From NCBI RefSeq assembly GCF_964188315.1, contig NC_135667.1, positions 21,204,001-21,268,000 on the forward strand: a stretch of 64,000 bases of DNA, given 5' to 3'. Source of the DNA: Podarcis muralis. Lineage: Eukaryota. The notes beneath the pieces were generated by a model. It did not search any database. It had not been told where the DNA came from and saw nothing but the letters and a program-made list of their open reading frames with translations. The translations under genes and the position numbers were made by a program. Below are positions 4-46,662 of the stretch, in pieces (the stretch's first letter is position 1; each line of letters starts with the position of its first letter).

Positions 4-1695
4 GTGGCCACGGAGCACCATTTGGACCCCAGGGAAACAGGCAGTAATCTTAGTCTGGGTCTGGCCTGGTCCCCCATCAAGTTGACCCCCTTAAAAAACC
101 TTTTAGACCACTACCCCAACAGGACTGCAGCAGTGTACTTATGGGAGGGTTTCAGTACCGGTTTTAGAATCCCAGTTGCCTTTCTCCCTAATTCGGGAGA
201 CCCTCCAAACCAAAAGTCAGTGAGGGAGATGCCCGAGGTTGCCCAAAAGAAGATTAGTAAGGAAATCAAGGCAGGAAGGGTAGCCGGCCCCTTCCTAGTC
301 CCCCCAATTGAAGGCCTCCATATATCCCCGTTAGGCATAGTCCCCAAAAAAGCGCCCGGTGAGTATCGCATGATTCACAACCTTTCCTACCCTAAGGGCG
401 GGTCGGTCAATGATGCGATACCGCAGGAACTCTGCACAGTGAGATATGCCACTTTCGATCAAGCCGTACAGCTCATACGCAAGTTCGGTAAGGGGGCGCT
501 GCTGGCAAAATGTGACATTGAGTCAGCCTTTAGACTCCTGCCAGTTCATCCGGAAGATTTCCGGTGGCTTGGCTTCAAATTTGATGGGGCGTATTTTGTA
601 GACAAGGCAATGCCCATGGGCTGCTCGGTAGCCTGCGCAGCCTTCGAGGCATTCAGCACCTTCCTGGACTGGGCACTCCGCTTCAAAACTGGCGCGGAGG
701 GCGTGTCGCATTACCTGGACGACTTTATCCTCGTGGAGGATAGCAGGCCCAAATGCGCAGAGCTCCTTGAAGCATTCACATCGCTAGCGGGAGAATTGGG
801 GGTGCCGCTAGCCGCCGATAAAACGGAGGGCCCGGCAACGACAATGGTGTACTTAGGTATTGAGCTGGACACTGTCGCTCAAACCTCAAAACTTCCCAGG
901 GAAAAACTCACTGCACTTGGTGATCTCATTAGGCAACTACTCCCCCTAAGAAAAGTTACACTCAGGCAAATCCAGTCACTGTTAGGACACTTAAATTTTG
1001 CTTGCCGTGTGGTTTCCCCTGGCCGCCCATTCTGCGGCCGCCTTGCGAAGTTGTCAGCAGGACTGCGTTCCCCTCATCATAGGGTTCGGCTATCCAAGGA
1101 AGTGAAGGCTGACCTGGAAGTCTGGTTGGAGTTCTTGCAGAACTATAACGGTATTTCCATGTGGCAGGACAACCTTGCGCTGCAGGTCGACTTCCAGGTC
1201 CATTCGGATGCTTCCGGCTCCCTGGGGTTTGGTGTTTACTTTAGGGGCCAATGGTGTGCCCAGCGCTGGCCCGCCGCCTGGCAAGGGGGTCCCATCACGA
1301 GAGACTTAACCTTCCTTGAATTCTTCCCGATTGTAGTGGCGGTGCACTTGTGGCCTGAAACATTTAGTAATCATAGGGTGTGCTTCCACACCGACAACCA
1401 GGCCGTAGTGGCGGTACTTTCCAGGCAGGTCGCACGGTCACCAAGGGTAGGGGGCCTCCTGCGTTCTTTCGTTCTCAGGTGCTTAGAGCTCAACATACAC
1501 TTCTCAGCAAAATTTGTCCCTGGTGTAAATAATGACATTGCGGATGCTTTATCTCGCTTTCAGATGGACCGCTTCCGCTCGTTGGCACCGGATGCAGAGC
1601 TGCTGCCTCAGCCATTCCCGGAACATCTGTGGAAGCTCGGGGACCAGAGGCGTGGGGACCTGAGTCCTGGGAGCCAGAAGTCATTCAGGGAGTAA
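4..1695 (+). CDS. Reverse transcriptase-RNase H of Ngaro/DIRS element (probably 5'-incomplete)
   Basis: LGIVPKK..YRMIHNLS, LAKCDIESAFRLLP, MPMGCS, HYLDDF (RT); VHSDAS, LEFFPI, FHTDNQAVV, NDIADALSR (RNase H). No stops in 563 codons. Confidence 0.92.
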   Translation: MATEHHLDPRETGSNLSLGLAWSPIKLTPLKNLLDHYPNRTAAVYLWEGFSTGFRIPVAFLPNSGDPPNQKSVREMPEVAQKKISKEIKAGRVAGPFLVPPIEGLHISPLGIVPKKAPGEYRMIHNLSYPKGGSVNDAIPQELCTVRYATFDQAVQLIRKFGKGALLAKCDIESAFRLLPVHPEDFRWLGFKFDGAYFVDKAMPMGCSVACAAFEAFSTFLDWALRFKTGAEGVSHYLDDFILVEDSRPKCAELLEAFTSLAGELGVPLAADKTEGPATTMVYLGIELDTVAQTSKLPREKLTALGDLIRQLLPLRKVTLRQIQSLLGHLNFACRVVSPGRPFCGRLAKLSAGLRSPHHRVRLSKEVKADLEVWLEFLQNYNGISMWQDNLALQVDFQVHSDASGSLGFGVYFRGQWCAQRWPAAWQGGPITRDLTFLEFFPIVVAVHLWPETFSNHRVCFHTDNQAVVAVLSRQVARSPRVGGLLRSFVLRCLELNIHFSAKFVPGVNNDIADALSRFQMDRFRSLAPDAELLPQPFPEHLWKLGDQRRGDLSPGSQKSFRE

Positions 1696-2573
1696 TGGCC
1701 TCGGTGGCACCTTCCACTTTGAGATCGTATAAGAAGGCTTGGTCGGATTTTTTAAAATTCCGCAACAAAACCTGCGCCATCAGAAACAATGCCCCTCCCG
1801 TCAAACCTGAGGTGCTAGCTTACCTAGTTTACCTGAGACGCTTGGGCCGCGCCCCTAGAACCCTCAACCTTCAAGCCGCGGCAATTTCGTTCTTTTGCAA
1901 GGCGGTATTTTCCACCGATCCTTGTGACGATTTTGTTATACGAAGGACGCTAGAGGGTTGGCGTAGGCTACAGCCCCCAAGCCATGATATGGGGAGGCCG
2001 ATAACATTCGACATCCTCTCTCAGATCCATAAAAGATTGCGAACAGTATGCTGGTCTAGATATGAGGCAAGATTATTTTCAGCAGCTTACTCCATTGCCT
2101 TTTTTGGAGCCCTGCGTGTGGGGGAGTTAGTTTACGAAGCTGGTCAGCACGGTTTCTCCCGGGGCTTGCTGTTAAGTGACGTTACCCTGTCACGGGAGGA
2201 CCTGGTGGTACGGATACGCAGCTCTAAAACAGACCAGTATGGGAGGGGGGCTCTGGTTCAGCTTATGGCCACCGATAGCCCTGGTCCATGTCCAGTTAAA
2301 GACACAAGGCGCTTTTTATCCATGAGGGTCAATTCGGCAGGGCCTCTGTTGATACACGCAGATGGTTTACCTTTGACTCGTCACCAGTTCACTCGGGTCA
2401 TGCGCCTAGCACTGGCAGCATGTGGCATCCCCGCAGCAGATTTTGCTTCACACTCTTTCAGGATAGGAGCAGCCACCACGGCAATGCACCTGGGGCTTAC
2501 AGCTGAGAGGATCAGGGACGTAGGGCGCTGGAAATCTGACGCGTACAAACGCTACTTGAGAAAAAACTTGTGA
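1629..2573 (+). CDS. Tyrosine recombinase (integrase) of Ngaro/DIRS element
   Basis: FFGALRVGEL, IRSSKTDQ, HSFRIGAAT, GRWKSDAYKRY: R-K-H-x-x-R-W-Y catalytic set. The true start is likely the ATG at 1695. Confidence 0.92.
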   Translation: MEARGPEAWGPESWEPEVIQGVMASVAPSTLRSYKKAWSDFLKFRNKTCAIRNNAPPVKPEVLAYLVYLRRLGRAPRTLNLQAAAISFFCKAVFSTDPCDDFVIRRTLEGWRRLQPPSHDMGRPITFDILSQIHKRLRTVCWSRYEARLFSAAYSIAFFGALRVGELVYEAGQHGFSRGLLLSDVTLSREDLVVRIRSSKTDQYGRGALVQLMATDSPGPCPVKDTRRFLSMRVNSAGPLLIHADGLPLTRHQFTRVMRLALAACGIPAADFASHSFRIGAATTAMHLGLTAERIRDVGRWKSDAYKRYLRKNL

Positions 2574-2617
2574 CGGTGACTGACCATGGTCTGTTTTTTC
2601 ACTCTCCTACAGGTGAT

Positions 2618-3184
2618 ATGGGGGTGCGCGTCTGGATTATCGGGCACAGTATTGTGCATTGGGCCAGGGTCCGCGCCATCATTACCGGTCTCGGGCCGCA
2701 CCTGGGCCTACCTGATGTCACTATTTCCTGGGTTTCCCGGAGGGGAATGCGCTGGGCCGAGTTACTGCCCGCAGTTAAGGCCAGAGCTGCAGTGGAGGGC
2801 CCCCCAGATGCTCTATTAATACAATTGGGTGAAAACGACCTTGCCTACAGGAAGGCAGTGGACCTGCAGTGGCACATTTTTAGTGACTTCGATGAGCTGA
2901 AGGCCGCTTACCCGAATGTCACGATTATTTGGGCCTCACTGATGGAGAGGCGGATTTGGAGGGACTGCAGGTGCCCGATAGCTTTGAATAGGGCTAGAAA
3001 AGCCTTGGATCGGGCGGTGGTGCGTAGAGTGGCAGCCCTGGGGGGGATGGTCATCGGCCACCCGGGCATTCGTTTCAACCTTGAGGCCCTCTACCGGTAT
3101 GATGGCGTGCATCTTTCGGATGCTGGTAATGATGTTTGGCTTAGGGATATTGCAAAGGGGATAATGGAGTGGATTCAGGCATGA
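2618..3184 (+). CDS. SGNH/GDSL-type hydrolase ORF of Ngaro element
   Basis: IIGHSIVHW (block I Ser), RRGMRW (block II), LGENDL (block III), DGVHLS (block V Asp-x-x-His). First in-frame ATG at 2618. Confidence 0.8.
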   Translation: MGVRVWIIGHSIVHWARVRAIITGLGPHLGLPDVTISWVSRRGMRWAELLPAVKARAAVEGPPDALLIQLGENDLAYRKAVDLQWHIFSDFDELKAAYPNVTIIWASLMERRIWRDCRCPIALNRARKALDRAVVRRVAALGGMVIGHPGIRFNLEALYRYDGVHLSDAGNDVWLRDIAKGIMEWIQA

Positions 3185-5400: not shown

Positions 5401-5603
5401 TGGACTAGATGACTCTGAGTGTCCCTCCCAACTCCATTATTTCCCCGCACCCCCCACCCCGTTCAGCGTAAATAGACTCCGGGAGAGCAGGGAGAGCTAA
5501 AAGCAGGTTTATTGGGGGTGGGCGGTGGGGAGGGACGTGGTCGAGGCTGCCACGTCCAGGCGGCACTTCTGCCGAGGGCGCCGGCTGCTTCTCTGGCCTA
5601 GCG

Positions 5604-6132
5604 TTATATGGAGAGCAGCCCGTTGCCGAAACACGCAGCCGAGCAGAAGATGCCCATTTCCACCTGGATGTCTGGGCTCGGCACCTGCAGGAGGGGCGAA
5701 GGCGGGGAGCGTTAGAGAGCACAGAGAGGCGCGAAGGGGCGAAGGAGGGACCCACGTCCGGAGCCCCCGCCCAACGGGGAGGGAGAGAGACTCACCCTGG
5801 AGTTGACGGGGTCCGCGAGTAGGTTCTGGGCGGGAAGGGCGCTCGGGTTGTCGAGGGCGCTGCCGAATAAGTTCAGGTTGATCCAGATTATCCTGGAGAT
5901 CTGCTCGCTCAAGAAGAGGGCTCTACGGGAGGAGGGGGAGAAGAAGGTCAGCTTGCGGGAAACGAGAGTAAAGAGGAGAAGGGCCGGGCCATGGCCTCGC
6001 CATCGGGAGAGGGTACTGCCCGACGGGGCGGGCTTACCTGGGCACAGCCTGGGCGCCGATGTCTGCGGAACGGGACGGGATCTCGGCCCAAACGGGCTGC
6101 ACGTGGCTCTGGTTGACTCCGCTCAGCGCCAT
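5604..6132 (-). CDS. Alpha-globin-derived 3-exon gene G1 (exons 6132-6038, 5922-5796, 5684-5604), 100 aa: MALSGVNQSHVQPVWAEIPSRSADIGAQAVPR/ALFLSEQISRIIWINLNLFGSALDNPSALPAQNLLADPVNSR/VPSPDIQVEMGIFCSAACFGNGLLSI
   Basis: GT-AG introns in phase 2 and phase 0; exon-1 CDS 95 nt; TGATAAAA at 6184-6177; AATAAA at 5513-5508; ungapped similarity to alpha-globin exon 1 and to LSDLHAHKLRVDPVNFK. Confidence 0.8.
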
Positions 6133-6173: not shown

Positions 6174-6200
6174 CCCTTTTATCACCGCCCGCCCTGCCCC
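6174..6200 (-). promoter_or_regulatory. TATA-position GATAAAA element with upstream GC box, G1 promoter (conserved in the other copies)
   Basis: GGGCGGGCGGTGATAAAAGGGC about 45-50 nt upstream of the ATG in G1-G5; CGATAAAAGG in G7; CATAAAAAGG in G8. Confidence 0.6.
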
Positions 6201-7157: not shown

Positions 7158-8200
7158 GAAGCCAGGCAAGAAGGCCCCGGCAGAAGAGTCTCTTGGGAGG
7201 GCAGCTGTGGGGGTAATGTGGGGCTGGTGCTCCATGCAGGCTTGCCATACTGGGGGAGGGAAGCAGGAGGAGAAGGCGTGAGCACTTTGGGGCATCACAA
7301 TTTTGCATGACCCCCCCCCCCAAGAAAACAGGATGTCCCAGACTGTTGACGGGCATGTGCCAGCCAGAGACCCTCTAGGTGAGTTTTGCAGACTACCAAT
7401 TGGGAACCGCTGATCTACAGTATTCCAAGTGTTTATGAACCACAGATTTGTAGAATGGCATTCTGGGAGCCACAGTCTTGTTTTTAAATGCATTTTCAAG
7501 TGACTCCCACCCAGCATGGAATGGGCCTTTTTCACAGCTGCAGAACACAGGGTTGGCCTTTTCATCCAGCTCTCCACTACCATCTTAAGGTCTCGATCCA
7601 CGTTGGCCACTGCCAATTCAAACCCATGAATATATATGTCTGGAGTTGAGATATGTCTTTTTGCATCACAGAATCATAGAGTTGGAAGGGATCCCGAGGC
7701 TCAACGAGCCCAACCCCCAGCAAGGAAGGAATCTCAGCTGAAGTATCCCAGACAGATGGACATCCAACCTCTGCTTTAAAATCTCCAAGGAAGGCAAGTC
7801 CACCACCTTCAGAGGGAGTCTGTTCCACTGTCAAACAGCTCTTGCTTTCAGAAAGTTATTCCAAGTGTTCACAGCGCTGCCCCCCCCAAGACAGCATTGC
7901 GGACGGCCTCAGCAACCTTAGCGCCCTGCTGGAGGAGGAGATGACCTTCCGAGGGAGTCTCTCTCCCTCCCTGTAGGGGGGCTCTGGAGGGGGTGTCCCT
8001 CCTTTCCTCTTTTGCACCCGCTCAATCCTCCCAGCCTAATGCTCCCCACCTCTGCTTCTCCTGCAGGTGCTGGGTAATATCATCATGGTGATGGCCACCT
8101 CAGAACCCAATTCCTAGGGACCGAGGTCCATTTGGGGTCCCCAATAAAGTATTGGAGGAGGCTGGGCCTCCACGAGACCAGCATCAGAGACCTCGCCCCC
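7158..8200 (+). repeat. Duplicon module C, copy 1
   Basis: Also at about 27250-28260, 35510-36315, 38480-40080 and 44200-45790; more diverged traces at 52380-52660 and about 55850. Confidence 0.8.
7890..8148 (+). pseudogene. Globin relic R1 (exon-2 3' end, intron 2, exon 3, polyA signal)
   Basis: GAC AGC ATT GCG GAC GGC CTC AGC AAC CTT AGC GCC CTG = DSIADGLSNLSAL; intron homologous to G intron 2 but donor GT lost; ctcctgcag acceptor at 8066; VLGNIIMVMATSEPNS*; AATAAA 8143-8148. Confidence 0.65.
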
Positions 8201-9969: not shown

Positions 9970-10563
9970 TGTGGGAATATTCTGGGGTGCAGGAGAGGAT
10001 ATATTGACTAATTATATCCTTATCCAACTTGTGCTAACAAGTTCCCAAAATATCAGCAGAGTTTATATACATTCCCCTTTAAGTTCGCAACGGTAACGTG
10101 TGCACAGGTTCGCTAGAACCTATATAATAATTACTCTGGTAATTTCCCCTTTGTTCCCTCTTAAAATACAAGACACAACATAGTCTTTATAAAAGTATAA
10201 AAGAGTTTACTCACGTTCTGTTCACAACATGATCCCAGAAGGCAGACAGGCTTAAAAAGTTACATATACTTAGAATCTATCTTGTTGCAAGATAGACCTT
10301 ATCTCCTCTCTTGGCTGAGAGGCAAGAGGGCATCTTTACATGCTTCCTCATCGAAGGAAAATGGCAGAGAGAGAGAGATGGCTGCCTGCCCTGTGCTTTT
10401 GTCATTACCTGGACAGTTGAGGCCACACCCACCTCTGGTCACATGTGGAGGAAGTCCATCCCCAGGAAGTTTACCTGATTGCTGGACAGACATCACTCCC
10501 CATGTACTAATATGTACACTCTAGGAATGTTGTCATTGACTGCTCCTGTGTTTACATCCCACA
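9970..10563 (-). mobile_element. Solo LTR related to the copia LTRs
   Basis: TG...CA termini, 594 bp, 5-bp TSD GGTTT (9965-9969 and 10564-10568); clearly homologous to but diverged from 14256-14845. Confidence 0.9.
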
Positions 10564-14255: not shown

Positions 14256-17200
14256 TGTGGGAATGTTCTGGGGTGCAGGAGAGGATATATTGACTAATTA
14301 TATCCTAATCCAACTTGTGCTAACAAGTTCCCAAAATATCAGCAGAGTTTATAAACATTCCCCTTTTGGTGCGCAACGGTAACGTGTGCACAGGTTCGCT
14401 AGAACCTCTATAATAATTACCCTGGTAATTTCCCCTTTAGTTCCCTCTTAAAATACAAGACACGACACAGTCTTCATAAAAGTATAAAAGAGTTTACTCA
14501 CGTTCTGTTCACAATGTTATCCCAGAAGGCACAGCTTAAAAAGGTTACATACATTTAGGATCTATCTTATAGCAAGATAGGCCTTATCTCCTCTCTTGGC
14601 TGGGAGCCAAGAGAGCATCCTTAGATGTTTCCTCATCGAAGGAAAATGGCAGAGAGAGAGATGGCTGCCTGCCCTGTGCTTTTTGTCATTACCTGCACAG
14701 GTGAGGCCACACCCACCTCTGGTCACATGTGGAGGAAATCCGTCCCCAGGAAGTTTACCTGCTTGCTGGACAGACATCCCCCCATGTTCTAACATGTACA
14801 CTCTAGGAATGTTGTCATTGACTGCTCCTGTGTTTACATCCCACATACCCCTTCTCAGGCAATACAACATATACAAAATATAAACAACTTTATTCAACCA
14901 CCCAGAGTCCCAGCTTGACACGTAGATTCTGGAAACTCTCTCTTGGTAGGGGTTTCGTCAGGATGTCAGCAGTCATCTCTTGGGTGCTGCAGTAGGATAG
15001 TTCCACAAGTCCATCCTGGATCATCTGGCGTATGTAGTGGTACTTAACCCCAATGTGTTTTGTTCTGGCCAGGAACTTCTCACTCTGCGTCAGCTTCAGG
15101 CAACTTTGATTGTCCTCCAGCAAGCTGACAGGCCCTTTCCTCACCAACCCAAAGTCCTTTATGAGTTGATCAAGCCAGGCGATCTCTCTGCAGGCTTCTG
15201 TTGCTGCAACGTATTCTGATTCTGTGGAAGATAATGCTACACAGCTCTGTTTATAACTGCCCCATGAAATAGGTCCATCACCAAACATGAAAACATGACC
15301 ACTTGTTGATTTATAGTCAGCATTATCCCCAGCCCAATCAGCATCAGTATACCCAATCAACTTAGGGTCTCTGACGGCTGGTAACCTTAATTTACAATTC
15401 ATGGTACCCTTCAAATATCGCACCACCCTCTTTACACCTGCCCAATCATGCTCAGTGGGAGAATTCACTTTTCTGCTAAGAATCCCCACAGCATTAGCTA
15501 AGTCAGGTCTACATGTGGTAACTAAATACAAAAGTTTACCAATCGCCGACCTGTAGTCATTGTTGTCTGGCAACTGCTTCGAATCCTGCTGATTCTTCAG
15601 GAAGTCAGTAGCCATCGGTGTAGCAACTGGATGTGCGTCTTGCATCTGCATGTGCTCAACTAGCTCGTGGATCTTCTGTCTTTGGCTAAGAAGAAATGAT
15701 CCGTCCTCTTCTCTTTCCACCTGGATCCCGAGGTAGTACTGGACATCTCCTAGCTCCTTGACCTCCACCTCTTTACTAAGGTGCTTTACTATCTGTGTAT
15801 AGTCTCTCTCACTTGCTGTGGCAATAATCAGGTCATCAACGAATGCTAGGATATATGAGAATTGTCCATTATTTGACTTACTGTACAAGCACTTGTCAGC
15901 GTCGCCTTGCTTGTACCCAAGTTGCGTCAGCATTTTATGCAACTTCTGGTTCCAGGCTCTGGCAGCCTGTTTAAGTCCATAAAGTCCTTTCTGTAGTTTG
16001 CACACTAGATGTGCCTCATGTGGTTTTACAAAACCTTTGGGCTGTTTCATATAAATTTCTTCAGAAATCTGCCCATGTAGAAAAGCGGTAGCAATGTCAA
16101 TGTGTTTCACCCTCATTTTCTTGGAGGCTGCAATGCTTAAAAGCATTCTTACGCTGCTGTACCTCACAGTTGGTGCAAAAACTTCATCGTAGTCTTCACC
16201 AAAACGCTGTGAAAATCCCTGTGCTACAAGTCTAGCTTTGTAGCGCTGCACTTCTCCTTCTGACCCCTTCTTAACCTTGAAAACCCATTTACTGCCAATG
16301 GCCTTCTTACCGGGAGGCAGCTCAGTGAGTGTCCAGGTCTTGTTCTGATGCAGTGCATCCATCTCCTCCTGCGCGGCCTTCCTCCAGAGACTGGCTTCAG
16401 CAGCTGGCATCTCCTGTATCTCTTCCCAAGTGGAAGGTTCCTGTGGAAACGCCGACCCTGCAAAGTAGGACAGCCGTAATGGTGGGACACCTTTGTTGGT
16501 TCTGGATGAGATCCTGACCTCTGGTTCTGCGACCGCATCAGCTTCCTCATCCTCCTCCAACGCAGGCATGTCCCCATCTGAGTCCTCATCTTCGTCTCTG
16601 GTGCCGCCAGGGTTCTGGTCCTCTGCGTCTTCTGGTGCGTCGCCTGTAGGGGGCACTGTAACACTCGAAGGCAGATTATTACTTTGTGGGGTCTCAAAAG
16701 GGAAATATACAAACTCTTGAGTCCTTTCTGACTCATCTGAAGAATCCACAACAGTGTTCTTAGTGTCTACTTTTCCATATTCATCAAAATAAACCGCATG
16801 GTATGCATTTGTCTTACCAGTTTGTAAGTCCATAATTCTGTATCCTTTGCCTCCAGAAGCATATCCCACAAGGATACCTGCTTTTGCCCTGGAGTCAAGC
16901 TTGTGTCTGTGTTCTTTGGGCACGTGGAAGTAACACGGACTTCCAAACACACGTATGTGTGACAGATTGGGAGCTTTCCCATGCCAAAGTTCAAATGGTG
17001 TGCGCTCTGCACCTTTAGTTGGCAGTCTATTCTGCAAATAGACTGACGTGTATACTCCTTCGGCCCACAGCTTTTGTGGCAAACGTGCATCCTTTAGCAT
17101 GCACCTTGTCATGTCCATAATGGACCTAAACTTTCTCTCAGCTATGGCATTCTGCTGTGGTGTGTAAGGAATTGTGGTTACGTGTGCAATTCCTTCTCTG

Positions 17201-19778
17201 GCCAGGAGAGCCTGCACTTCATTTGAGCAGTACTCACCTCCATTGTCACTCATTAACACAGCTGGAGCTCTCTGGAATTTGTTCTTGACCATGGCAATGT
17301 ATTCCTGGAGCTTGTCCACTGTCTCACTCTTCTCTTTGAGGAAATATACAACACAAAATCTTGAAAAATCATCCAGAAATATTAAAATGTATCTATTCTT
17401 TCCCAGTGAGGGAACATTCATGGGTCCACATATGTCAGTGTGCACTATGTCAAGCACTTTGTTGCTTCTTTGTTCTGCACAACGTGGAAATGAAGGTTTT
17501 ATAGCCTTCTCAGTAATACAGCTTATGCACTTTGCTGGAGCTTTGTTGCTCTGCTTTACCTGCAAACCTCTTACAAGATTTCTTTTCTGTAGATCCAGAA
17601 TGGCGCTGGTGTCCCTGTGTCCTAGCCTTCTGTGCCATAAGTCCAGATCTGCTTCATCCTTCTGGCTGGAATGTGCCACTTTTGCAGACTGGTTCTCTGA
17701 AAGATCAAGCTCATATACACCATTTATTAGCTTTGCTTGAGCAAACACTTTGCCACTTCTAGTCACTTTACATTCTCCATTTCCAAATGTGACCTGGAAA
17801 CCTTTCTTGTCCAAAGTGGACACGCTGATTAAATTGCAACTCAGCTCTGGAACATACAAAACTCTAGAGATTGTGTTCTCAATGCATTCATTGTTTATAT
17901 TGCATTTCAGGCTCATGGAACCTGCACCTTTTGCTTTAACAATGTTGCCATCTGCAATCTCAATTTCAGATCCTTCTTCATCATTTATTTCATTAATCTC
18001 ATTAAAATAGTCCTTTTTATATGAAAAATGCGAACTGGCACCTGAATCTAAAATCCATTTGTTACGTTTATTTTCACGATTCTGGACAGCTAAGTTCCTT
18101 TCTTGCAGTAACCATGTGCATTCACATTTCCCCTTCTTTTCCCCTTTTGGCTGAAAGGGGTGGGGTTTCTTGGCTTTAGGAGCTCTGCAGTTCTTTGCAA
18201 TGTGTCCTTCTTTGTTACAATTGAAGCAAATCACTTTCTTAGGCATCTCTTTGGACTTTGTACATTGCCTAGATGCATAACTGCTGTCCTTGCTTCTAGC
18301 ATTCCTCACTGGAGATTCAGCTCTATCTCTGCATTCTTCTTTTAAATAACCAATCAAGTCTTTAAAAGTCAGACCTTGTCTATGATCCATCAAACTTACA
18401 AATGTGCTAAAGCGTGGTCCAAGTGATGATAACAAAAATGCTATCTTTGTATCCTCATCAAAAGCTTTGGGAGTCAGATCAATTCTTTGAATAATCTCAG
18501 TAAACTTGTTGATGTGCTCTGTGAATTCCTCTTTTGAATTCATCCTCAATCTGGTTAATTTACACACCAAGTTTCTGAAGCTGTTTATGCTAGATTCTCC
18601 ATACACGCGTTCAATATCTCTTAAGATTTGAGATGCATCATCTGTACTATTTATTAATGATAGCTGCTCATCACGAAGTCCACTCAAAATTATGTGTCTA
18701 GCTTCGCTGTTCATGCGTTTCCAAGCACTTATCTTGGCTAAATCTCCCTCAGACGATCCCGTAGGTTGAGGGTTTAAAGCTTCCAAAATATGCTTATAAT
18801 CTAAACATGCTATCAAGCGCTGCTTCCAGTGTATGAAATTGTATTCATTCAGCACAGGCATTCCAAGCTTTGCATCACTATCAAAAGCTGCTCTAGCCAT
18901 CTTAAAATCCAAAATTTGAAAATTCTTCAAAATTTCAAAATTTCTCAAAATTTTAAAATCAAAATCTCAAAAATCTCAAAATGCAAAACAATTCTTCACT
19001 GCCTTGGGTCACTGTGAACTCTGAGGGAAGGGGGGGGGGTTGCTTAATCCCCACTGCACAATGGAACAAAGGACCATGTGCTTACCAGGAAGTTAACTCA
19101 GAAAAAATACTACTCAACTCAAAATCACAATCCAACGCAATCCTTCAAAAATACGCAGAAATATGCAATACTGGGCCCACTAACCCTTTGTGGGAATGTT
19201 CTGGGGTGCAGGAGAGGATATATTGACTAATTATATCCTAATCCAACTTGTGCTAACAAGTTCCCAAAATATCAGCAGAGTTTATAAACATTCCCCTTTT
19301 GGTGCGCAACGGTAACGTGTGCACAGGTTCGCTAGAACCTCTATAATAATTACCCTGGTAATTTCCCCTTTAGTTCCCTCTTAAAATACAAGACACGACA
19401 CAGTCTTCATAAAAGTATAAAAGAGTTTACTCACGTTCTGTTCACAATGTTATCCCAGAAGGCACAGCTTAAAAAGGTTACATACATTTAGGATCTATCT
19501 TATAGCAAGATAGGCCTTATCTCCTCTCTTGGCTGGGAGCCAAGAGAGCATCCTTAGATGTTTCCTCATCGAAGGAAAATGGCAGAGAGAGAGATGGCTG
19601 CCTGCCCTGTGCTTTTTGTCATTACCTGCACAGGTGAGGCCACACCCACCTCTGGTCACATGTGGAGGAAATCCGTCCCCAGGAAGTTTACCTGCTTGCT
19701 GGACAGACATCCCCCCATGTTCTAACATGTACACTCTAGGAATGTTGTCATTGACTGCTCCTGTGTTTACATCCCACA
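14256..19778 (-). mobile_element. Full-length Ty1/copia LTR retrotransposon
   Basis: LTRs 14256-14845 and 19189-19778 (590 bp each, TG..CA, no difference seen by eye); TSD CCTGC (14251-14255, 19779-19783); PBS-like GGTTAGTGGGCCCAG next to the 5' LTR; PPT GAGAAGGGGTA next to the 3' LTR. Confidence 0.97.
14890..18900 (-). CDS. Copia gag-pol polyprotein (single ORF, about 1336 aa from the ATG at 18900)
   Basis: CFNCNKEGHIAKNC knuckle, WILDSGASSH protease, LWHRRLGH and TDICGP/SDNGGEY/ERK integrase, KARLVAQG and FVDDLI RT, TDADWAG/EDNQ/ADILTK RNase H, in PR-IN-RT-RH order. Confidence 0.96.
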   Translation of the reverse strand: MARAAFDSDAKLGMPVLNEYNFIHWKQRLIACLDYKHILEALNPQPTGSSEGDLAKISAWKRMNSEARHIILSGLRDEQLSLINSTDDASQILRDIERVYGESSINSFRNLVCKLTRLRMNSKEEFTEHINKFTEIIQRIDLTPKAFDEDTKIAFLLSSLGPRFSTFVSLMDHRQGLTFKDLIGYLKEECRDRAESPVRNARSKDSSYASRQCTKSKEMPKKVICFNCNKEGHIAKNCRAPKAKKPHPFQPKGEKKGKCECTWLLQERNLAVQNRENKRNKWILDSGASSHFSYKKDYFNEINEINDEEGSEIEIADGNIVKAKGAGSMSLKCNINNECIENTISRVLYVPELSCNLISVSTLDKKGFQVTFGNGECKVTRSGKVFAQAKLINGVYELDLSENQSAKVAHSSQKDEADLDLWHRRLGHRDTSAILDLQKRNLVRGLQVKQSNKAPAKCISCITEKAIKPSFPRCAEQRSNKVLDIVHTDICGPMNVPSLGKNRYILIFLDDFSRFCVVYFLKEKSETVDKLQEYIAMVKNKFQRAPAVLMSDNGGEYCSNEVQALLAREGIAHVTTIPYTPQQNAIAERKFRSIMDMTRCMLKDARLPQKLWAEGVYTSVYLQNRLPTKGAERTPFELWHGKAPNLSHIRVFGSPCYFHVPKEHRHKLDSRAKAGILVGYASGGKGYRIMDLQTGKTNAYHAVYFDEYGKVDTKNTVVDSSDESERTQEFVYFPFETPQSNNLPSSVTVPPTGDAPEDAEDQNPGGTRDEDEDSDGDMPALEEDEEADAVAEPEVRISSRTNKGVPPLRLSYFAGSAFPQEPSTWEEIQEMPAAEASLWRKAAQEEMDALHQNKTWTLTELPPGKKAIGSKWVFKVKKGSEGEVQRYKARLVAQGFSQRFGEDYDEVFAPTVRYSSVRMLLSIAASKKMRVKHIDIATAFLHGQISEEIYMKQPKGFVKPHEAHLVCKLQKGLYGLKQAARAWNQKLHKMLTQLGYKQGDADKCLYSKSNNGQFSYILAFVDDLIIATASERDYTQIVKHLSKEVEVKELGDVQYYLGIQVEREEDGSFLLSQRQKIHELVEHMQMQDAHPVATPMATDFLKNQQDSKQLPDNNDYRSAIGKLLYLVTTCRPDLANAVGILSRKVNSPTEHDWAGVKRVVRYLKGTMNCKLRLPAVRDPKLIGYTDADWAGDNADYKSTSGHVFMFGDGPISWGSYKQSCVALSSTESEYVAATEACREIAWLDQLIKDFGLVRKGPVSLLEDNQSCLKLTQSEKFLARTKHIGVKYHYIRQMIQDGLVELSYCSTQEMTADILTKPLPRESFQNLRVKLGLWVVE

Positions 19779-25622: not shown

Positions 25623-26159
25623 TTATATGGAGAACCCCCCGTCGCCGAAATACGCAGCCGAGCAGAAGATGCCCATTTCCAGCTGGATGTCTAGGCTCGG
25701 CAGCTGTGGGAGCGGCGAAGGGGGGGAGCGTTAGAGAGGACAGAGAGGCGCGAAGGAGGGACCCACGTCTGGGGCCCCCGCCCGACGGGGAGGGAGACAG
25801 ACTCACCCTGGAGTTCACGGGGTCCGCGAGCAGGTTCTGGGCGGGCAGGGCGCTCAGGTTGCTGGGGTCGCCCTCGCCGTCATCCATAACGAGGTGGCAG
25901 CCTAACTGGAAGAGGATAATCTTCAGTTCCTCCTCTGAGGGGCCGGTGCTACGGGAGGAGGGGGAGAAGAAGGTCAGCTTGCGGGAAACGAGAGTAAAGA
26001 GGAGAAGGGCCGGGCCATGGCCTCGCCATCGGCAGAGGGTCCCTGCCCGACGGGGCGGGCTTACCTGGGCACAGCCCGGGCGCCGATATCTGCGGAACGG
26101 GACGGGATCTCGGCCCAAACGGGCTGCACGTGGCTCTGGTTGACTCCGCTCAGCGCCAT
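25623..26159 (-). CDS. Alpha-globin-derived gene G2 (exons 26159-26065, 25948-25807, 25703-25623), 105 aa: MALSGVNQSHVQPVWAEIPSRSADIGARAVPS/TGPSEEELKIILFQLGCHLVMDDGEGDPSNLSALPAQNLLADPVNSR/LPSLDIQLEMGIFCSAAYFGDGGFSI
   Basis: Same splice signals as G1, open spliced frame, AATAAA at 25521-25516. Confidence 0.8.
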
Positions 26160-28265
26160 CCTGCCAGCTCAACCTCTTGGTGCCGTCGGAGTAGGGGCAG
26201 CCCTTTTATCACCGCCCGCCCTGCCCCCCGGGTGGCGTCTCCCTCGGCCTCTGCGAGCGCTTCCTTCCCTCCCTCGGCCTCGGCAAGGATCCGGGACGGG
26301 GCGCACGAGCCCTGGCAAGTGAGCATCCTCCTCGCAATTCCCGCTGCCTGCTGCCAGGCGGACACCGTCGAGCATCTTCGCTGGACGCTCCCTGGGCGAT
26401 GATGACTCGGTAGTCCTGACACCCCCCCACCGCCCTGCGAGGTCGGCCAGTCAGTCTTCTTCCCCCATTGCTGCGCACGGCAGAGGGGCACGAGGGCAGG
26501 TCCTCGCCTGCGGGGGTGGAAGCTACGACCCAAATCGAACCAAATGGGTCGCTCCTTTGAACGCCAGGCCAATCGCCGGCAGGACTGCAGGTGCGGGAGA
26601 GAGGAAGGATCAGTCCATCCAGCTGAATGGGGGCATTTGGCCCTCGGCGTCCTCCCCCCAAGGGACTCACAGGAAGCTTGGCTGGCAAGAAAGAAGGGGG
26701 GCGGGTCCTTGTGGGGATCAGGACTGGCGAAGCAGCAGGAAAGCAGAGACCGTTCTCCCCATTCCAAGTCACCCAAAAGGGGAACATATTGAGGGTGGGG
26801 CTGAGAATCTAGTTCAGTTTACTTAAAAATACGCAGGACTGAAGAGTTCATGGAAGGCCTAACAGGTTTATGGAAATCAACAAAGGAGCAGATTTCAAGC
26901 AACAACTTGGAACATGAAAAGAAAGAACAACGCTTATCCAATCTATAGTTCAGCCCATCTACCGTAATTAGTGAGGTTAAATATATGTGGGAAGCAGACT
27001 GGATTATTAGAAATAATTTTAGGTTACTAAACTGCAGCCCAGTTCCAAACTGACCATTTCCTACCCACCCTGAAATGAGAAAGAAGAATTTTGTTTAATT
27101 GCTTATTTGTTAATTAGGATTCATGGGGAAATGGTCCAGTTTGGAACTGAGCCCCAGTTCAGTAGCCTAGAAATTACTATGTGTTGAGAGTGCAAAGTTG
27201 GAGGCAGCAGGGAGCCCTCAAGACTGTCCTGGAAGGAACTCCAGGGGATGAGCAACCAGGGATGATAAATTGACACCTTCGCCACAGACTGCAAGCAATG
27301 GTTCATTTCCTGTGTTCACCAAAGTGGGTGGTCATTATAGGTGTCCAAGGTGGGTCACCTACACATACATTCCTATCCACACCAAACCAAATGGTTATTA
27401 GAGGTCATTATGCAGGCCATTATGCAGGGACCTGCCCATGTATACCTATCCAAACACAGACATACACTTTTGGTGCACACTTATGAGTGGCAGAGTGGGT
27501 GTAGGCCACATCTATGAGAAGGTGGAAGTGTGAGTGGCAGCAGAATTCCCCGGTTCAGCTAACCCAGAAGCTAAAAGAGGAGGATCGTCTGTGACCTTGC
27601 AGGCCATTTCTCCCCTTGTCCACCAAAGGCTGAGCATGGAAGCCAGGCAAGAAGACACCTGCAGAAGAGTCTCTTGGGAGGGCAGCTGTGGGGGTAATGT
27701 GGGGCTGGTGCTCTATGCAGGCTGGCCATACTGGGGGAGGGAAGGAGGAGGAGAAGGCGTGAGCCCTTTGGGGCATCACAATTTTGCATGACACCCCCCC
27801 CCCAAGAAGACAGGATGTCCCAGACTGTTGACGGGTATGTGCCAGCCACAGACCCTCTAGGTGAGTTTTGCAGACTACCAATTGGGAACCGCTGATCTAC
27901 AGTATTCCAAGTGTTTTTGCACCACAGATTTGTGAATGGCATTCTGGGAGCCACAGTCTTGTTTTTAAATGCATGTTCAAGTGACCCCCACCCAGCATGG
28001 AATGGGCCTTTTTCACAGCTGCAGAACACAGGGTTGGCCTTTTCCTCCAGCTCTCCACTACCATCTTAAGGTCTCGATCCAGATTGGCCACTGCCAGTTC
28101 AGACCCAGGAATATATATGTGTGGAGTTAAGATATGTCTTTTTGCATCACAGAATCATAGAGTTGGAAGGGATCCCGAGGCTCACCAAGCCCAACCCCCA
28201 GCAAGGAAGGAATCTCAGCTGAGGAATCCCAGACAGATGGCCAGCCAACCTCTGCTTTTAAAGTC

Positions 28266-30244: not shown

Positions 30245-32583
30245 GGGGATGGGGGTAGGACAAGGTTTTGAAAATGGTATAGGTGCAATTTATTCAGAAC
30301 AAAAGGCAAAATTAATTGTGAATAATGTGATGACAGAAGAGTTTAAGATTGAAAAAGGGACACGACAAGGTTGCCCAATTTCTCCATTGCTTTTTATATC
30401 GGTCCTAGAGGTTTTGCTAAATATGATTAGAAAGGACCAAGAGGTTAAAAGTATACAGGTGGGAGCTAAACAGTATAAATTGAAAGCATTTGCTGATGAT
30501 TTAGTATTGACCTTACAGGAGCCAGAACCTAGTACTAAAAGGGTATTGAAACTGATTCAAGAATTTGGACAGGTTGCAGGTTTTAAGTTGAATAAGATGA
30601 AAACCAAGGTTCTAGAGAAAAATTTAACTATGAATGAGAGAGAGAGGTTTCAGGAGGAGACAGGACTAACATTGGTTAAAAAAGTGAAATATTTAGGGGT
30701 TAACATGACTGCTAAAAATGTGAACCTATTTAAGGATAATTATGAAAAATGTTGGACTGAAGTGAAAAAGGATTTAGAAGTATGGACAAATTTGAAGCTA
30801 TCATTGTTAGGCCGAATTGCTATGATAAAAATGAATGTGCTGCCAAGGATGTTATTTTTGTTCCAAACATTGCAAATATTGGATAAGATGGATTGTTTCA
30901 AGAAGTGGCAGAAGGATATTTCTAGATTTGTTTGGCAGGGCAAGAAGCCTCAAATAAAATTTAAGATATTAACGGATGCTAAAGAAAGAGGTGGATTTGC
31001 CCTGCCAGACCTTAAACTTTATTATGAATCAGCTGCTTTTTGTTGGCTGAGAGAATGGCTGCTTCTTGAAAATACTGAAGTGTTGGACTTAGAAGGTTTT
31101 AACAATGTATTCGGATGGCATGCATATTTGTGGTATGATAAGGTAAAAGCACATAAAGCATTTAAAAATCATATTGTCAGAAAAGCATTGTTTAATGTTT
31201 GGATAAGATATAAAGATTTGTTAGGGAAAAAAACCCCAAGATGGTTGTCACCAATGGAAGCAAAGGGACAGAAAAAACTCAATATGGAGGCCAAATGGCC
31301 GAAATATTGGGAAATTCTGGAACAAGATGGAGAGAGAATAAAATTGCAGAGCTTTGAAAAATTGAAAAACAAAGTGCGAGATTGGCTCCATTACTATCAA
31401 ATAATGGAGGCATACAAATTGGATAAAAAAGTTGGTTTCCAGGTGGAAAAATCAAAATTGGAAACAGAATTGTTAGATCCAAAAAACTAAGAATTTGTCA
31501 AGAATGTATAACTTGCTGTTGAAATGGAACACTCAGGATGAAACGGTGAAATCAGCTATGATTAAATGGGCACAAGATGTTGGACATAACATAATGATGG
31601 CTGACTGGGAACAGTTATGGACCACAGGTATGAAGTTCACGGCATGTAATGCTTTAAGAGAAAATTTAATGAAAATGATTTATAGGTGGTACATGACACC
31701 AGTTAAGCTTCAAAAAATCTACCATTTGCCCGATAATAAATGTTGGAAATGTAATGAGACTGAAGGTAAATTCTTTCACCTTTGGTGGACATGCCCAAGG
31801 ATTAAGGCATTCTGGGAGATGATTTATAATGAAATGAAGAAGGTATTTAAATATACCTTCCTGAAGAAACCAGAGGCCTTTCTCCTGGGCATGGTCGGCC
31901 AATTGGTGTTAAAGAAGAATAGAACTTTTTTTATGTATGCAACAACAGCAGCAAGAATACTCATCGCGAAATATTGGAAGACACAAGATTTACCCACCAG
32001 GGAAGAATGGCAGATGAAGTTGATGGACTATATGGAACTGGCGGAAATGACTGGCAGAATCCGAGACCAGGGAGAAGAGTCGGTGGAAGAAGACTGGAAA
32101 AAGTTTAAAGACTATTTACAGAAATACTGCAAAATTAATGAATGTTGGAATGAAGTTATATGTTGGAATGAAGTTATATGGCTTTAGTAGAAATGTTATA
32201 AGGAATTAAGTATAAATAGATCATTAGAGCATTAAAGGGAAAAATAAGGTTAGAATGTGTTAAGACAATTATAGGATAGAAACTAGAGGAAGATGGAAAG
32301 GAATTGCTGAAACAATCAATAGAAGTGGAATACAAAAAGGGAGGTGTGAGGAGGTCGTGGAAATAAGGGAAAGAAGGATAAAATATTGAAATTGGACTGT
32401 GTTTTAAATGGTTTTTGTTTTGTTTTGTTAGTTGTATGTTAGTGTTTTGTAGTTTTATTTATTATTATTATTGTTGTTGTTGTTGTTGTTGTATTGTATT
32501 ATTGTATGTTTTTTCTTTTTTTGGTTTTTTGTAGTGTTGTGTTCAATTTGTTGGAAAACTAATAAATATTATCATATAAAAAA
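30245..32583 (+). mobile_element. 5'-truncated L1-clade LINE (ORF2 RT to C-terminus, 3' UTR, A tail)
   Basis: KGTRQGCPISPLLF, AFADD, YLGV, CWKC..HLWWTC; reading frame broken at about 31490; AATAAA then an A-rich tail at about 32560-32583. Confidence 0.9.
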
Positions 32584-34064: not shown

Positions 34065-34793
34065 ATCCAGTCCTGCGTATTTTTAAGTTAAGTGAACTAG
34101 ATTCTCAGCCCCACCCTCAATATGTTCCCCTTTTGGGTGGCTTCGAATGGGGAGAACGGTCTCTGCTTTCCTGCTGCTTCGCCAGTCCTGGTCCCCACAA
34201 GGACCCGCCCCCCTTCTTTCTTGCCAGCCAAGTTTCCGGGGAGTCCCTTGGGGAGAGGACGCCGAGGACCAAATGCCCCCATTCAGCTGGATGGACTGAT
34301 CCTTCCTCTCTCCCGAATCTGCAGTTCTGCCGGCGACTGGCCTGGCGGTTCGATTTGGTTCGATTTGGGTCGCAGCTTCCACCCCCTCCCCCGCAGGCGA
34401 GGACCTGAGAGAGAACCTCCGCGCCCGGCTTTCTGGGAAGCCCCATTCCTCCCTTCCCCTCGTTCCCCTCTGCCGTGCGCAGCAATGGGGGAAGAAGACT
34501 GACTGGCCGACCTCGCGGGTGTGTGTGTGTGTGTCAGGACTACCGAGTCATCATCGCCCAGGGAGCGTCCAGCGAAGATGCTCGACGGTGTCCGCCTGGC
34601 AGCAGGCAGCGGGAATTGCGAGGAGGATGCTCGCTTGCCAGGGCTCGTGCGCCCCGTCCCGGATCCTTGCCCAGGCCGTGGGAGGCAAGGATGCGCTGGC
34701 AGAGGCCGGGGGAGACGCCACCCGGGGGACAGGGCGGGCGGTGATAAAAGGGCTGCCCCTGCTCCGACGACACCAAGAGGTTGAGCTGGCAGA

Positions 34794-35342
34794 ATGGCGC
34801 TGAGCGGAATCAACCAGAGCCACGTGCAGCCCGTTTGGGCCGAGATCCCGTCCCGTTCCGCAGACATCGGCGCCCGGGCTGTGCCCAGGTAAGCCCGCCC
34901 CGTCGGGCAGGGACCCTCTCCCGATGGCGAGGCCATGGCCCGACACATCTCCTCTTTATTGTCGTAAGCTGACCTTCTTCTCCCCCTCCTCCCGTAGAAT
35001 CGTCTCCTTGGGGGAGTACGTCTCCAAGTTATTGTGCAGGATCAACACGGGCTCATATGCCCGCGCCCTGGAGGAAGGCGAGGGCGACCGCAGAAACCTG
35101 AGCGTCCTGCCCGCCCAGAACCTGCTGGCGGACCCCGTCAACTCCAGGGTGAGTCTGTCTCCCTCCCCGTCGGGCGGGGGCTCCAGACGTGGGTCCCTCC
35201 TTCGCCCCTTCGCCCCTTCGCGCCGCTCCGTCCTCTCTAACGCTCCCCGCCTTCGCCTCTCCCACAGCTGCCGAACCAAGACACCGAGGAGGAAATGGAC
35301 GTCTTCAGCGAGGCTGTGCTCATCATCAACGCGCTGCTCTAA
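34794..35342 (+). CDS. Alpha-globin-derived gene G3 (exons 34794-34888, 34998-35148, 35268-35342), 106 aa: MALSGINQSHVQPVWAEIPSRSADIGARAVPR/IVSLGEYVSKLLCRINTGSYARALEEGEGDRRNLSVLPAQNLLADPVNSR/LPNQDTEEEMDVFSEAVLIINALL
   Basis: TGATAAAA 34742-34749; GTAAG..CTGAC..TAG and GTGAG..CAG introns; TAA followed in frame by TAC CGC TAG (Y-R-stop); AATAAA 35435-35440. Confidence 0.82.
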
Positions 35343-36512
35343 TACCGCTAGGCCAGAGAAGCAGCCGGCGCCCTCCGCAGAAGTGCCGCCTGGACGTGGC
35401 AGCCTCGAGCACGTCCCTCCCCACCCCCACCCCTAATAAACCTGCTTTTAGCTCTCACTGCTCTCCCGGAGTCTATTTAGGCTGAACGGGGTGGGGGGGG
35501 GGGTGCGGGATCAGCAACCAGGGATGATAAGTTGACACCTTCACCGCAGACTGTTCATTTCCTGTGTTCACCAAAGTGGGTGGTCATTATAGGTGTCCAG
35601 GGTGGGTCACCTACACATACATTCCTATCCACACCAAACCAAGTGGTTATTAGAGGTCATTATGCAGGCCATTATGCAGGGACCTGCCCATGTATTCCTA
35701 TCCAAACACAGACATACACTTTTGGTGCACGCTTATGAGTGGCAGAGTGGGTGTAGGCCACATCTATGAGAAGGCAGAAATGTGAGTGGCATCAGAATTC
35801 CCTGGTTCCGCTAACCCAAGAGCTAAAAGAAGAGGAGCGTGTGTGACCTTGCAGGCCATTTCTCCCCTTGTCCACCAAAGGCTGAGCATGGAAGCCAGGC
35901 AAGAAGGCACCTGCAGAAGAGTCTCTTGGGAGGGCAGCTGTGGGGGTAATGTGGGGCTGGTGCTCTATGCAGGCTGGCCATACTGGGGGAGGGAAGGAGG
36001 AGGAGAAGGCGTGAGCACTTTGGGGCATCACAATTTTGCATGACACCCCCCCCCCAAGGAAACAGGATGTCCCAGACTGTTGACGGGCATGTGCCAGCCT
36101 AGGTGAGTTTCGCAGACTACCAATTGGGAACCGCTGATCCACAGTATTCCAAGTGTTTTTGCACCACAGATTTGTAGAATGGCATTCTGGGAGCCACAGT
36201 CTTGTTTTTAAATGCATTTTCAAGTGAACCCCACCCAACATGGAATGGGTCTTTTTCACAGCTGCAAAACACAGGGTTGGCCTTTTCATCCTGCTCTCCA
36301 CTACCATCTTAAGGTCGGACTAGATGACTCTGAGTTTCCCTCCCAACTCCATTATTCCCCCACCCCACCCCGTTCAGCCTAAATAGACTCCAGGAGAGCA
36401 GTGAGAGCTAAAAGCAGGTTTATTGGGGTGGGGGGGGGGAGGGACGTGGTCGAGGCTGCCACGTCCAGGCGGCACTTCTGCGGAGGGCGCCGGCTGCTTC
36501 TTTCGCCTAGCG

Positions 36513-37065
36513 TTATATGGAGAACACCCCATCGCCGAAGCACGCAGCCGAGCTGAAGATGCCCATTTCCACCTGGATGTCTGGGCTCGGCACCTGCAGG
36601 AGGGGCGAAGCGGGGAGCGTTAGAGAGGACGGAGCGGCGCGAAGGGGCGAAGGAGGGACCCACGTCTGGAGCCCCCGCCCGACGGGGAGGGAGACAGACT
36701 CACCCTGGAGTTGACGGGGTCCGCGAGCAGGTTCTGGGCGGGCAGGGGGCTCGGGTTGCTGCGGTTGCCCTCGCCTTCCTCCAGGTCGCGTAAGTATGAG
36801 TCCAGGTCGATACAGGTGAATACCTCGAGGATGTACTCCTCTAAAAGGCCGTTTCTACGGGAGGAGTGGGAGAAGAAGGTCAGCTTGCGGGAAACGAGAG
36901 TAAAGAGGAGAAGGGCCGGGCCATGGCCTCGCCATCGGCAGAGGGTCCCTGGCCGACGGGGCGGGCTTACCTGGGCACAGCCTGGACGCCGATGTCTGCG
37001 GAACGGGACGGGATCTCGCCCCAAACGGGCTGCACGTGGCTCTGGTTGACTCCGCTCAGCGCCAT
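36513..37065 (-). CDS. Alpha-globin-derived gene G4 (exons 37065-36971, 36854-36704, 36593-36513), 108 aa: MALSGVNQSHVQPVWGEIPSRSADIGVQAVPR/NGLLEEYILEVFTCIDLDSYLRDLEEGEGNRSNPSPLPAQNLLADPVNSR/VPSPDIQVEMGIFSSAACFGDGVFSI
   Basis: Same splice signals, open spliced frame, AATAAA at 36424-36419. Confidence 0.8.
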
Positions 37066-39658: not shown

Positions 39659-39917
39659 GACAGCATTGCGGACGGCCTCAGCAACCTGAGCGCCCTGCTG
39701 GAGGAGGAGATGATCTTCCAAGGGAGTCTCTCTCTCTCCCCTTAGGGGGGCTCTGGAGGGGGCGTCCCTCCTTTCCTCTTTTGCACCCGCTCAATCCTCC
39801 CAGCCTAATGCTCCCCACCTCTGCTTCTCCTGCAGCTGCTGGGTAATATCATCATGGTGATGGCCACCTCAGAATCCAATTCCTAGGGACCGAGGTCCAT
39901 TTGGGGTCCCCAATAAA
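39659..39917 (+). pseudogene. Globin relic R2
   Basis: As R1; exon 3 from 39836 reads LLGNIIMVMATSESNS*; AATAAA 39912-39917. Confidence 0.65.
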
Positions 39918-45392: not shown

Positions 45393-45637
45393 GACAGCAT
45401 TGCGGACGGCCTCAGCAACCTAAGCGCCCTGCTGGAGGAGGAGATAACCTTCTGAGGGAGTCTCTCTTCCTCCCCGTAGGGGGGCTCCTCCTTTCCTCTT
45501 TTGCACCCGCTCAATCCTCCCAGCCTAATGCTCCCCACCTCTGCTTCTCCTGCAGCTGCTGGGTAATATCATCATGGTGATGGCCACCTCAGAACCCAAT
45601 TCCTAGGGACCAAGGTCCATTTGGGGTCCCCAATAAA
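45393..45637 (+). pseudogene. Globin relic R3
   Basis: As R1; exon 3 from 45556 reads LLGNIIMVMATSEPNS*; AATAAA 45632-45637. Confidence 0.65.
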
Positions 45638-46660: not shown

Positions 46661-46662
46661 AG

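Follow-up and report, generated by a model that had tools for sequence, protein, structure and literature searches.

The window analysed here is a stretch of 64,000 nucleotides (nt) from Podarcis muralis (assembly GCF_964188315.1, contig NC_135667.1, positions 21,204,001 to 21,268,000 of the forward strand). Members of an alpha-globin-derived gene family were located in it by blastn and tblastn, which revealed seven three-exon genes and one relic (c1 to c8, with mixed orientations: -,-,+,-,-,-,+,-). No true globin gene was found in the 64 kb, and the remainder is mostly retrotransposon sequence. The family genes are annotated as protein-coding by NCBI.

The gene under study, c1, is a compact three-exon gene on the minus strand with a product of 100 amino acids (aa). 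Exon 1 (6038-6132, 95 nt) starts with the ATG at 6132, aligns with alpha residues 2-31, holds the only histidine of c1 (His10) and ends AG/gtaagc (exon boundaries are marked by a slash) with the phase-2 end of alpha-globin. Exon 2 (5796-5922, 127 nt, 42 codons and one split codon) has canonical splice sites (acceptor CCCGTAG/, donor /GTGAGT); its 5' two thirds are hypervariable among copies, while the 54 nt at its 3' end are conserved. Exon 3 (5604-5684, 26 codons and the stop) follows alpha exon 3 co-linearly except for an internal deletion, and its new stop lies two codons ahead of the old TAG. The 3' end of intron 1 (5923-5955) is the former globin exon 2 start, approximately 10 codons corresponding to alpha 32-40 that read LTFFSPSSR in frame. 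A TATA-like box, GATAAAA, which is also a TGATAA (GATA-type) motif, lies at 6177-6183 and a polyadenylation signal, AATAAA, at 5508-5513, all on the minus strand.

Several comparisons established that these genes have an alpha-globin ancestry. A profile of eight family members matched only haemoglobin alpha chains among the PDB matches listed, with alphaA chains of birds and turtles prominent and E 2.6e-5 for the best single chain, and a phmmer search of the PDB sequences with the c4 protein returned almost only haemoglobin alpha chains (best E 0.004). A retrocopy from Podarcis lilfordi (P0009, described below) reached, on its own, E 1.5e-8 to an alpha chain; its residues 3-40 align with alpha 2-39 and residues 43-98 with alpha 79-141, and its VLTSKYR end is identical. 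Intron positions and phases are those of alpha-globin (after codon 31, phase 2; after codon 99, phase 0), and the end of exon 2 (...VNSR/gt) matches the end of alpha exon 2 (...VNFK99). The old LTSKYR end with its TAG is still legible in several copies, downstream of newer stops. Pfam Globin (PF00042) had no hit in nine family proteins with a cut-off as loose as E<=10, and residues 146-231 of P0010, an intron-retaining NCBI isoform (the intronised stretch plus exons 2-3), had no PDB match at E<=10. The sequences indicate that the seven genes and the relic descend from a single duplicate of an alpha-globin gene. Residue numbers are those of the alpha-chain stretches printed by HMMER (2-49, with Phe43, and 78-141, with His87, Phe98 and Leu101).

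A previous reading of this stretch, made from the letters alone (hereafter the sequence-only reading), had proposed that haem-binding residues are eliminated in every copy at 5796-5922, coordinates that are exactly those of c1 exon 2 on the minus strand. HMMER aligned the family segment LPAQNLLADPVNSR to the alpha-chain segment LHAHKLRVDPVNFK in the register S-A-L-P-A-Q-N-L-L-A-D-P-V-N-S-R on S-D-L-H-A-H-K-L-R-V-D-P-V-N-F-K, in which the proline falls on the proximal His87 (F8). In c1 this codon is CCC (5832-5834, minus strand), and it is also CCC, one base away from CAC (His), in c2 to c5 and c7. The proline assigned to these six copies was therefore correct; of the codons proposed for it (CCC or CCT-type), CCC is the one used in all six and CCT was seen only in one P. 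lilfordi copy. In c8, where the segment had been thought to be deleted, it is present, co-linear and gap-free with GAC (Asp) at the F8 position, and the conclusion is unaffected. No other histidine is set at F8 by the alignment, which has Pro there (Asp in c8). A P. lilfordi copy related to c8 (l_c) has GGC (Gly).

The loss of the canonical haem ligands is complete, and several other pocket residues are gone as well. Phe98 (G5) and Leu101 (G8) of alpha chains contact haem and are confidently aligned, and every window copy has Ser and Pro respectively at these positions (in c1, TCC at 5799-5801 and CCG at 5679-5681, minus strand). In the long copies, counting from the old exon-2 start places L, G, V or H, and never Phe, at alpha Phe43 (CD1); in the short lineage (c8 and P0009), alpha residues 40-78 are absent in the HMMER alignment. 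The absence of CD1 Phe, as previously read, holds for both lineages. Position E7 was bracketed in two ways, forward from the old exon-2 start and backward from F8 (windows of 9-17 residues), and no histidine was found in the bracket in any P. muralis copy. A count that needs no alignment agreed with the earlier view that no histidine is conserved near E7: His10 (exon 1, helix A), which is invariant across all copies, is the sole histidine in 7 of 11 copies, and the extra histidines of m2, m7, l_a and l_c lie at four differing positions. No conserved Cys, Met or Tyr was found in the old pocket region across the copies examined.

Exons 2 and 3 are far below the 68 and 42 codons of alpha-globin, in line with the sequence-only reading. 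In the long copies exon 2 is 42-50 codons long and exon 3 is 24-28; the counts for c8 are 27 and 18. The family proteins have 75-108 aa, with approximately 35-65 of the 141 alpha residues missing. In the long lineage, the old exon-2 acceptor (cag/G in c8, which retains it) is now caa/G, and splicing occurs at an AG 33 nt downstream. The skipped stretch reads in frame LTFFSPSSR in 8 of 9 copies and LTFFSHSSR in c4 (m4), matching MFLSFPTTK with Pro37 in register, and P0010 translates it in the same frame. Because the F8 histidine, the CD1 phenylalanine and the distal histidine are lost, G5 and G8 are replaced and approximately 35-65 residues are missing, the comparison supports the view that the window copies cannot hold haem in the globin manner or carry oxygen. 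Every line of sequence evidence agrees with the earlier claim that they are not oxygen carriers. Any function of the family proteins would be haem-independent.

The other intact members are spread over the window. c2 (25623-26159, minus strand; exons 26159-26065, 25948-25807 and 25703-25623) encodes 105 aa (P0003, LOC144325097) with its F8 CCC at 25845-25843, and c3 (34794-35342, plus strand; exons 34794-34888, 34998-35148 and 35268-35342) encodes 106 aa with CCC at 35110-35112. c4 (36513-37065, minus strand; exons 37065-36971, 36854-36704 and 36593-36513; CCC at 36742-36740) encodes 108 aa (P0001), 100% identical to the NCBI entry 'uncharacterized protein LOC144325310 [Podarcis muralis]'. c5 (41794-42340, minus strand; exons 42340-42246, 42136-41986 and 41874-41794; CCC at 42024-42022) also encodes 108 aa (P0002, LOC144325096). 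c7 (50213-50737, plus strand; exons 50213-50307, 50424-50562 and 50651-50737; CCC at 50524-50526) encodes 106 aa (LOC144325095), and its stop is the original globin TAG. c8, of the short type (57338-57766, minus strand; exons 57766-57678, 57591-57510 and 57394-57338), encodes 75 aa with the F8-aligned GAC at 57548-57546. The relic c6 (46653-46747, minus strand) is limited to an exon 1 with a stop at codon 5, after MALS, an example of a truly dead copy beside intact family genes.

Each of the seven full window copies keeps a TATA box, ATG, canonical GT-AG splice sites, an open frame and AATAAA. Disabling lesions are absent from c1 to c5, c7 and c8; stops or lost splice sites are confined to c6 and the P. 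lilfordi copy l_c. In every long copy the TATA-like box is TGATAAAAGG (6175-6184, 26204-26210, 34743-34749, 37110-37116, 42385-42391 and 50161-50167), which doubles as a GATA-type motif; c8 carries CATAAAAAGG there. This motif might hint at erythroid control of the long copies. Duplication in units of several kilobases is established by c1 to c5, which lie within segmental duplications of at least 4 kb with non-coding flanks 94-96% identical over kilobases. c3 and c4 (34794-37065) form a convergent tail-to-tail inverted pair with poly(A) signals approximately 1 kb apart.

Weak blastn matches at 7955-8070, 39717-39839 and 45458-45488 correspond to pyrimidine-rich intron 2 and not to globin exons. 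Among the retrotransposon sequences, an uninterrupted copia-type gag-pol open reading frame (ORF) of 1352 aa (gag, zinc knuckle, integrase, RVT_2) occupies 14890-18948 on the minus strand, apparently an intact long terminal repeat retrotransposon inside the array. Further reverse-transcriptase ORFs lie at 4-3184 and 30249-32187, both on the plus strand; the ORF after the first of these weakly matches phage-integrase SAM-like sequences and may belong to a DIRS-like element.

The window copies were compared with P. lilfordi copies l_a to l_d (from L002 and L003) and with the P0009 locus. All nine long copies of both species have Pro at F8, and so has P0009, which the start of its exon 2 places in the short lineage. 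Further change in the four 'LPAQ' codons is confined to c8 (IDSG) and l_c (LGTG). These comparisons establish a single origin, the simplest history being one ancestral loss of the haem pocket, then copied by duplication. Chance is the wrong null for the shared proline, because the state was inherited from one ancestor. The claim of elimination in every copy is thus right as to the loss itself, but the loss was not repeated from copy to copy.

Two P. lilfordi copies, at 15088 and 3402 of L002 (OX395138.1; both on the minus strand), deserve comment. One, l_c, is a dead short-type copy with acceptor CCG and donor GTATGA, and its exon 2 of 79-80 nt is out of frame. For the other, l_d, the annotated 145-aa protein P0007 seems to be a wrongly spliced model; exon 2 of l_d ends GGG/gt, in contrast to AGG/gt in the other copies.

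A profile search of 1.84 billion cluster representatives (annotated proteins, not genomes; an exhaustive search that lists E<=0.001 only) returned only Podarcis proteins, no alpha-globins among them, and one bacterial S-layer repeat protein (P0011, 37 bits), a spurious match. At E<=10, a word search based on the family profile listed the nine family proteins and nothing else, and in the literature searched we found no paper linking Podarcis with an alpha-globin-derived family. The family has been seen so far only in Podarcis.

P0009 (L001:9805-10652, P. lilfordi OX395140.1) is a short-type copy of 98 aa with an open ORF, on another chromosome than the family cluster and between unrelated genes. 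It lacks both introns, exactly at the predicted junctions, ends with AATAAA and a short A run, and has on either side a direct repeat of 14 nt, AAAGGTAATCAGGG (L001:9805 and 10639; target-site duplication). Because the introns are absent and the A run and the 14-nt repeat are present, it is a processed retrocopy. Past transcription and splicing are thereby established: the retrocopy shows that a spliced family mRNA with Pro at F8 once existed in the germline. P0009 also carries approximately 180 nt of promoter upstream of the TATA box, and the template RNA therefore began upstream of it; isoforms X1 and X2 of LOC144325095 at NCBI likewise begin upstream of the TATA box. A tRNA-like short interspersed element lies within the P0009 3' untranslated region (UTR), at approximately 10316-10560. 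In a bulk RNA run (X15, of which approximately 12% was read), five reads mapped to c4, in exon 1, on the 3' side of exon 2, and in exon 3 with the 3'UTR; none fell on introns or flanks, and all were oriented as minus-strand RNA. Two further runs, X1 and X3, were rejected as RNA support: they contain promoter and intron sequence with paralogue-like differences and are probably DNA.

The constant and variable parts of the coding sequence differ greatly in divergence. In the 54-nt constant part of exon 2 that holds F8, the mean difference among long copies was 0.058, vs. 0.043 and 0.069 for the introns, and the share of variable columns did not differ between the F8 segment and the introns (p=0.55). 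There is no evidence of selection on Pro at F8, and the segment changes at the intron rate. By contrast, the mean difference was 0.39 and 0.27 in the two variable patches (exon 2 and exon 3 respectively). In four phylogenetically independent closest pairs, the proportion of nonsynonymous differences (pN) in the patches was 0.221, that of synonymous differences (pS) 0.136 and the non-coding difference 0.041 (pN/pS 1.62, binomial p=0.035; pN vs. non-coding, p=5e-27). The two coding patches diverge approximately five times faster than non-coding DNA, and the exon-2 patch of the m1/l_a pair has 10 replacement and 0 silent changes. The non-coding divergence of approximately 5% is the true neutral baseline, because identity between the flanks of the duplicated units is 94-96% across kilobases. 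The possibility that the constant parts were merely homogenised, and that the patches show the true age, was ruled out by the equal similarity (94-96%) of kilobases of non-coding flank. The exon-2 variable part has 72, 75, 84, 87 or 96 nt, and exon 3 has two 3-nt changes. There were at least six coding length changes, all in frame (a rough estimate of the chance of six is (1/3)^6), while the introns carry 1- and 7-nt changes plus other sizes.

The proteins have no N-terminal hydrophobic segment or signal peptide (N-terminal hydropathy approximately 0). Net charge varies between 0 and -10. Hydrophobicity is moderate in the C-terminal stretch, where the 19-residue hydropathy peaks at 1.0-1.6; as this value is at best borderline, the idea of a tail anchor or transmembrane segment was rejected. 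Cys residues occur in exon 3 of several copies. The AlphaFold model, from an alignment of 8 sequences, has three helices (36-46, 49-58 and 86-106).

The history that best joins these observations, to which we assign a probability of about 0.6, is one ancestral pocket loss, copied by duplication, with most copies still live protein-coding genes with diversifying patches. In the family ancestor, His87 became Pro by one base (CAC to CCC), Phe98 Ser and Leu101 Pro. The C-CD-E region was then deleted or overwritten in two ways: by deletion of alpha 40-78 in the short lineage (c8, P0009), and in the long lineage (c1 to c5, c7) by the 33-nt downstream move of the acceptor and the loss of 8-16 codons, the remainder diverging beyond recognition. 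Approximately 7 codons were lost from the G-H region. Segmental duplication in units of at least 4 kb spread the pocket-less gene into the array, every copy inheriting the loss. The predicted product is a cytosolic protein of approximately 100 aa, with a constant remnant of the alpha-globin A and B helices, a variable middle, a constant LPAQNLLADPVNSR linker and a variable C-terminal helix. The two patches may form a binding surface diversified by point change and by module swapping between copies, and Pro at F8 would be a frozen relic of the original inactivation. The family proteins are likely to have a function, and most copies probably still encode proteins whose two variable patches matter.

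The main rival is a young pseudogene array with patchy exchange between copies, which we consider possible but doubtful. One inactivated, unprocessed alpha-globin duplicate would have been passively copied, its frames open through youth (approximately 5% divergence) and GC-richness; the patches would reflect a local mutational process or patchy gene conversion among older modules, and transcription a leftover promoter activity. Several results favour this and weigh against the live-gene history. No purifying selection was detectable in the constant parts of the coding sequence, where exon 1 together with the F8 segment has 8 synonymous and 16 nonsynonymous variant codons, a neutral-like pattern (p=0.25; exon 1 ratio approximately 1.07). 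The patch pS is also approximately threefold the non-coding rate, and therefore a mutational or module-swapping input exists; the patch pN/pS is above 1 only with modest significance. Exon-2 and exon-3 module types assort independently among copies, and exchange of older modules among copies therefore adds to the divergence: c3 and c5 (m3 and m5) have a common exon-2 patch but are 19 replacement sites apart in exon 3. (The exon-3 class VPSPDIQVEMGIF is common to c1 and c4, and LPNQDTQEEMD to c3, c7 and l_b.) In exon 2, 6 of 9 copies have no stop in the +2 frame either, so that the absence of stops is weak evidence in such GC-rich DNA. RNA coverage is very low: the X15 reads are only five, all of them partial fits and four 95-99% alike, and may stem from paralogues; no transcript contig encodes any member exactly, each protein being found on one contig, the genome. 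AlphaFold gave no confident fold (predicted local distance difference test score 52, predicted template modelling score 0.18), and Foldseek found no match in the PDB, which is weak evidence with so poor a model; neither outcome speaks for a residual fold or against one. Finally, c6 and l_c are dead members. Passive copying accounts poorly, however, for at least six independent patch length changes that are all multiples of three beside intron changes of 1 and 7 nt, for pN above pS in the independent pairs and the 10 to 0 ratio of m1/l_a, and for intact splice sites, starts, TATA boxes and poly(A) signals in 7 of 8 window copies. Neutral decay, moreover, cannot outrun the neutral rate of the kilobase flanks.

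The loci could also act as non-coding RNA, for example by modulating true globin genes, as the RNA of a human beta-globin pseudogene reportedly does. The most conserved parts are the promoter, exon 1, introns and 3'UTR, and the retrocopy and the few reads show that transcripts exist. These parts are, however, no more conserved than kilobases of flanking non-coding DNA, and the reading frame is implicated by length changes that preserve it and by an excess of nonsynonymous differences. We consider this account very unlikely. Binding of haem or another tetrapyrrole through a non-canonical ligand (His10, Cys or Met) is hardly credible. Loose haem binding would be compatible with the sequence alone, His10 is invariant and the exon-3 Cys residues offer candidates in several copies, but there is no conserved candidate besides His10, whose place in helix A is distant from the globin pocket. 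Of the walls of that pocket, the CD corner, most of E and part of G-H have been lost or replaced, a proline at each of F8 and G8 would disrupt helices F and G, and Pfam Globin does not match. A bolder form of the live-gene history would make the family the first case among vertebrates of a haemoglobin derivative that took on a role independent of haem and grew into a set of diversifying genes, with red-cell expression and patches in an arms race. In it, the alpha-globin-type promoter with TGATAA would drive expression in nucleated red cells, and the patches would bind an arms-race target such as the intra-erythrocytic haemogregarines common in Podarcis. We consider this unlikely.

Globins are the classic example of a protein family conserved in structure and function, and to our knowledge duplicates of vertebrate globins have been thought either to remain oxygen binders or to decay as pseudogenes. 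If the history of live genes with diversifying patches is true, it would add a third fate for a globin duplicate and a clean natural example of a protein built anew on the remains of a former fold. With a haem loss that is real, complete and single, how each copy lost haem needs no separate answer, and interest turns to the role of the surviving reading frame.

The family resembles haemoglobin alpha (PF00042; sauropsid alphaA/alphaD) in similarity (E 1.5e-8 to 2.6e-5), three exons and intron phases, as well as in the alpha-type N-terminus, the FG corner 'DPVN' and the relic LTSKYR-stop end. It differs in lacking the proximal and distal histidines, the CD1 phenylalanine and 35-65 residues, in the replaced G5 and G8 and in having neither a Pfam match nor a predicted globin fold. 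Mammalian theta- and mu-globin are weakly expressed alpha-like genes that have kept the haem ligands. Like them and like alpha-globin pseudogenes, the Podarcis genes are alpha duplicates with a doubtful or absent protein product, retained promoters and low transcription; unlike them, they number at least 8 copies in the window, with intact ORFs and splice sites, in-frame changes and faster-than-neutral patches. Members of the globin superfamily that gave up haem and act through other interactions are also known from bacteria and algae (RsbR N-domain, phycobiliproteins, photoglobin), and these non-haem globins keep the whole fold (PMC8717448; PMC4976288). Those are ancient and complete in fold, whereas the Podarcis family is young, vertebrate and without a predicted fold, and has large deletions: the short type lacks alpha 40-78, and the long type lacks 8-16 codons with 10 more intronised (the AlphaFold model being poor). 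In mode of evolution only, the family recalls toxin and defensin families, as its near-identical introns, UTRs and exon 1 stand beside in-frame patches with more replacement than silent change. Toxin and defensin families are fast-evolving tandem genes with constant non-coding DNA and hypervariable coding patches; the Podarcis proteins differ from them in having no signal peptide, no cysteine framework and another ancestry.
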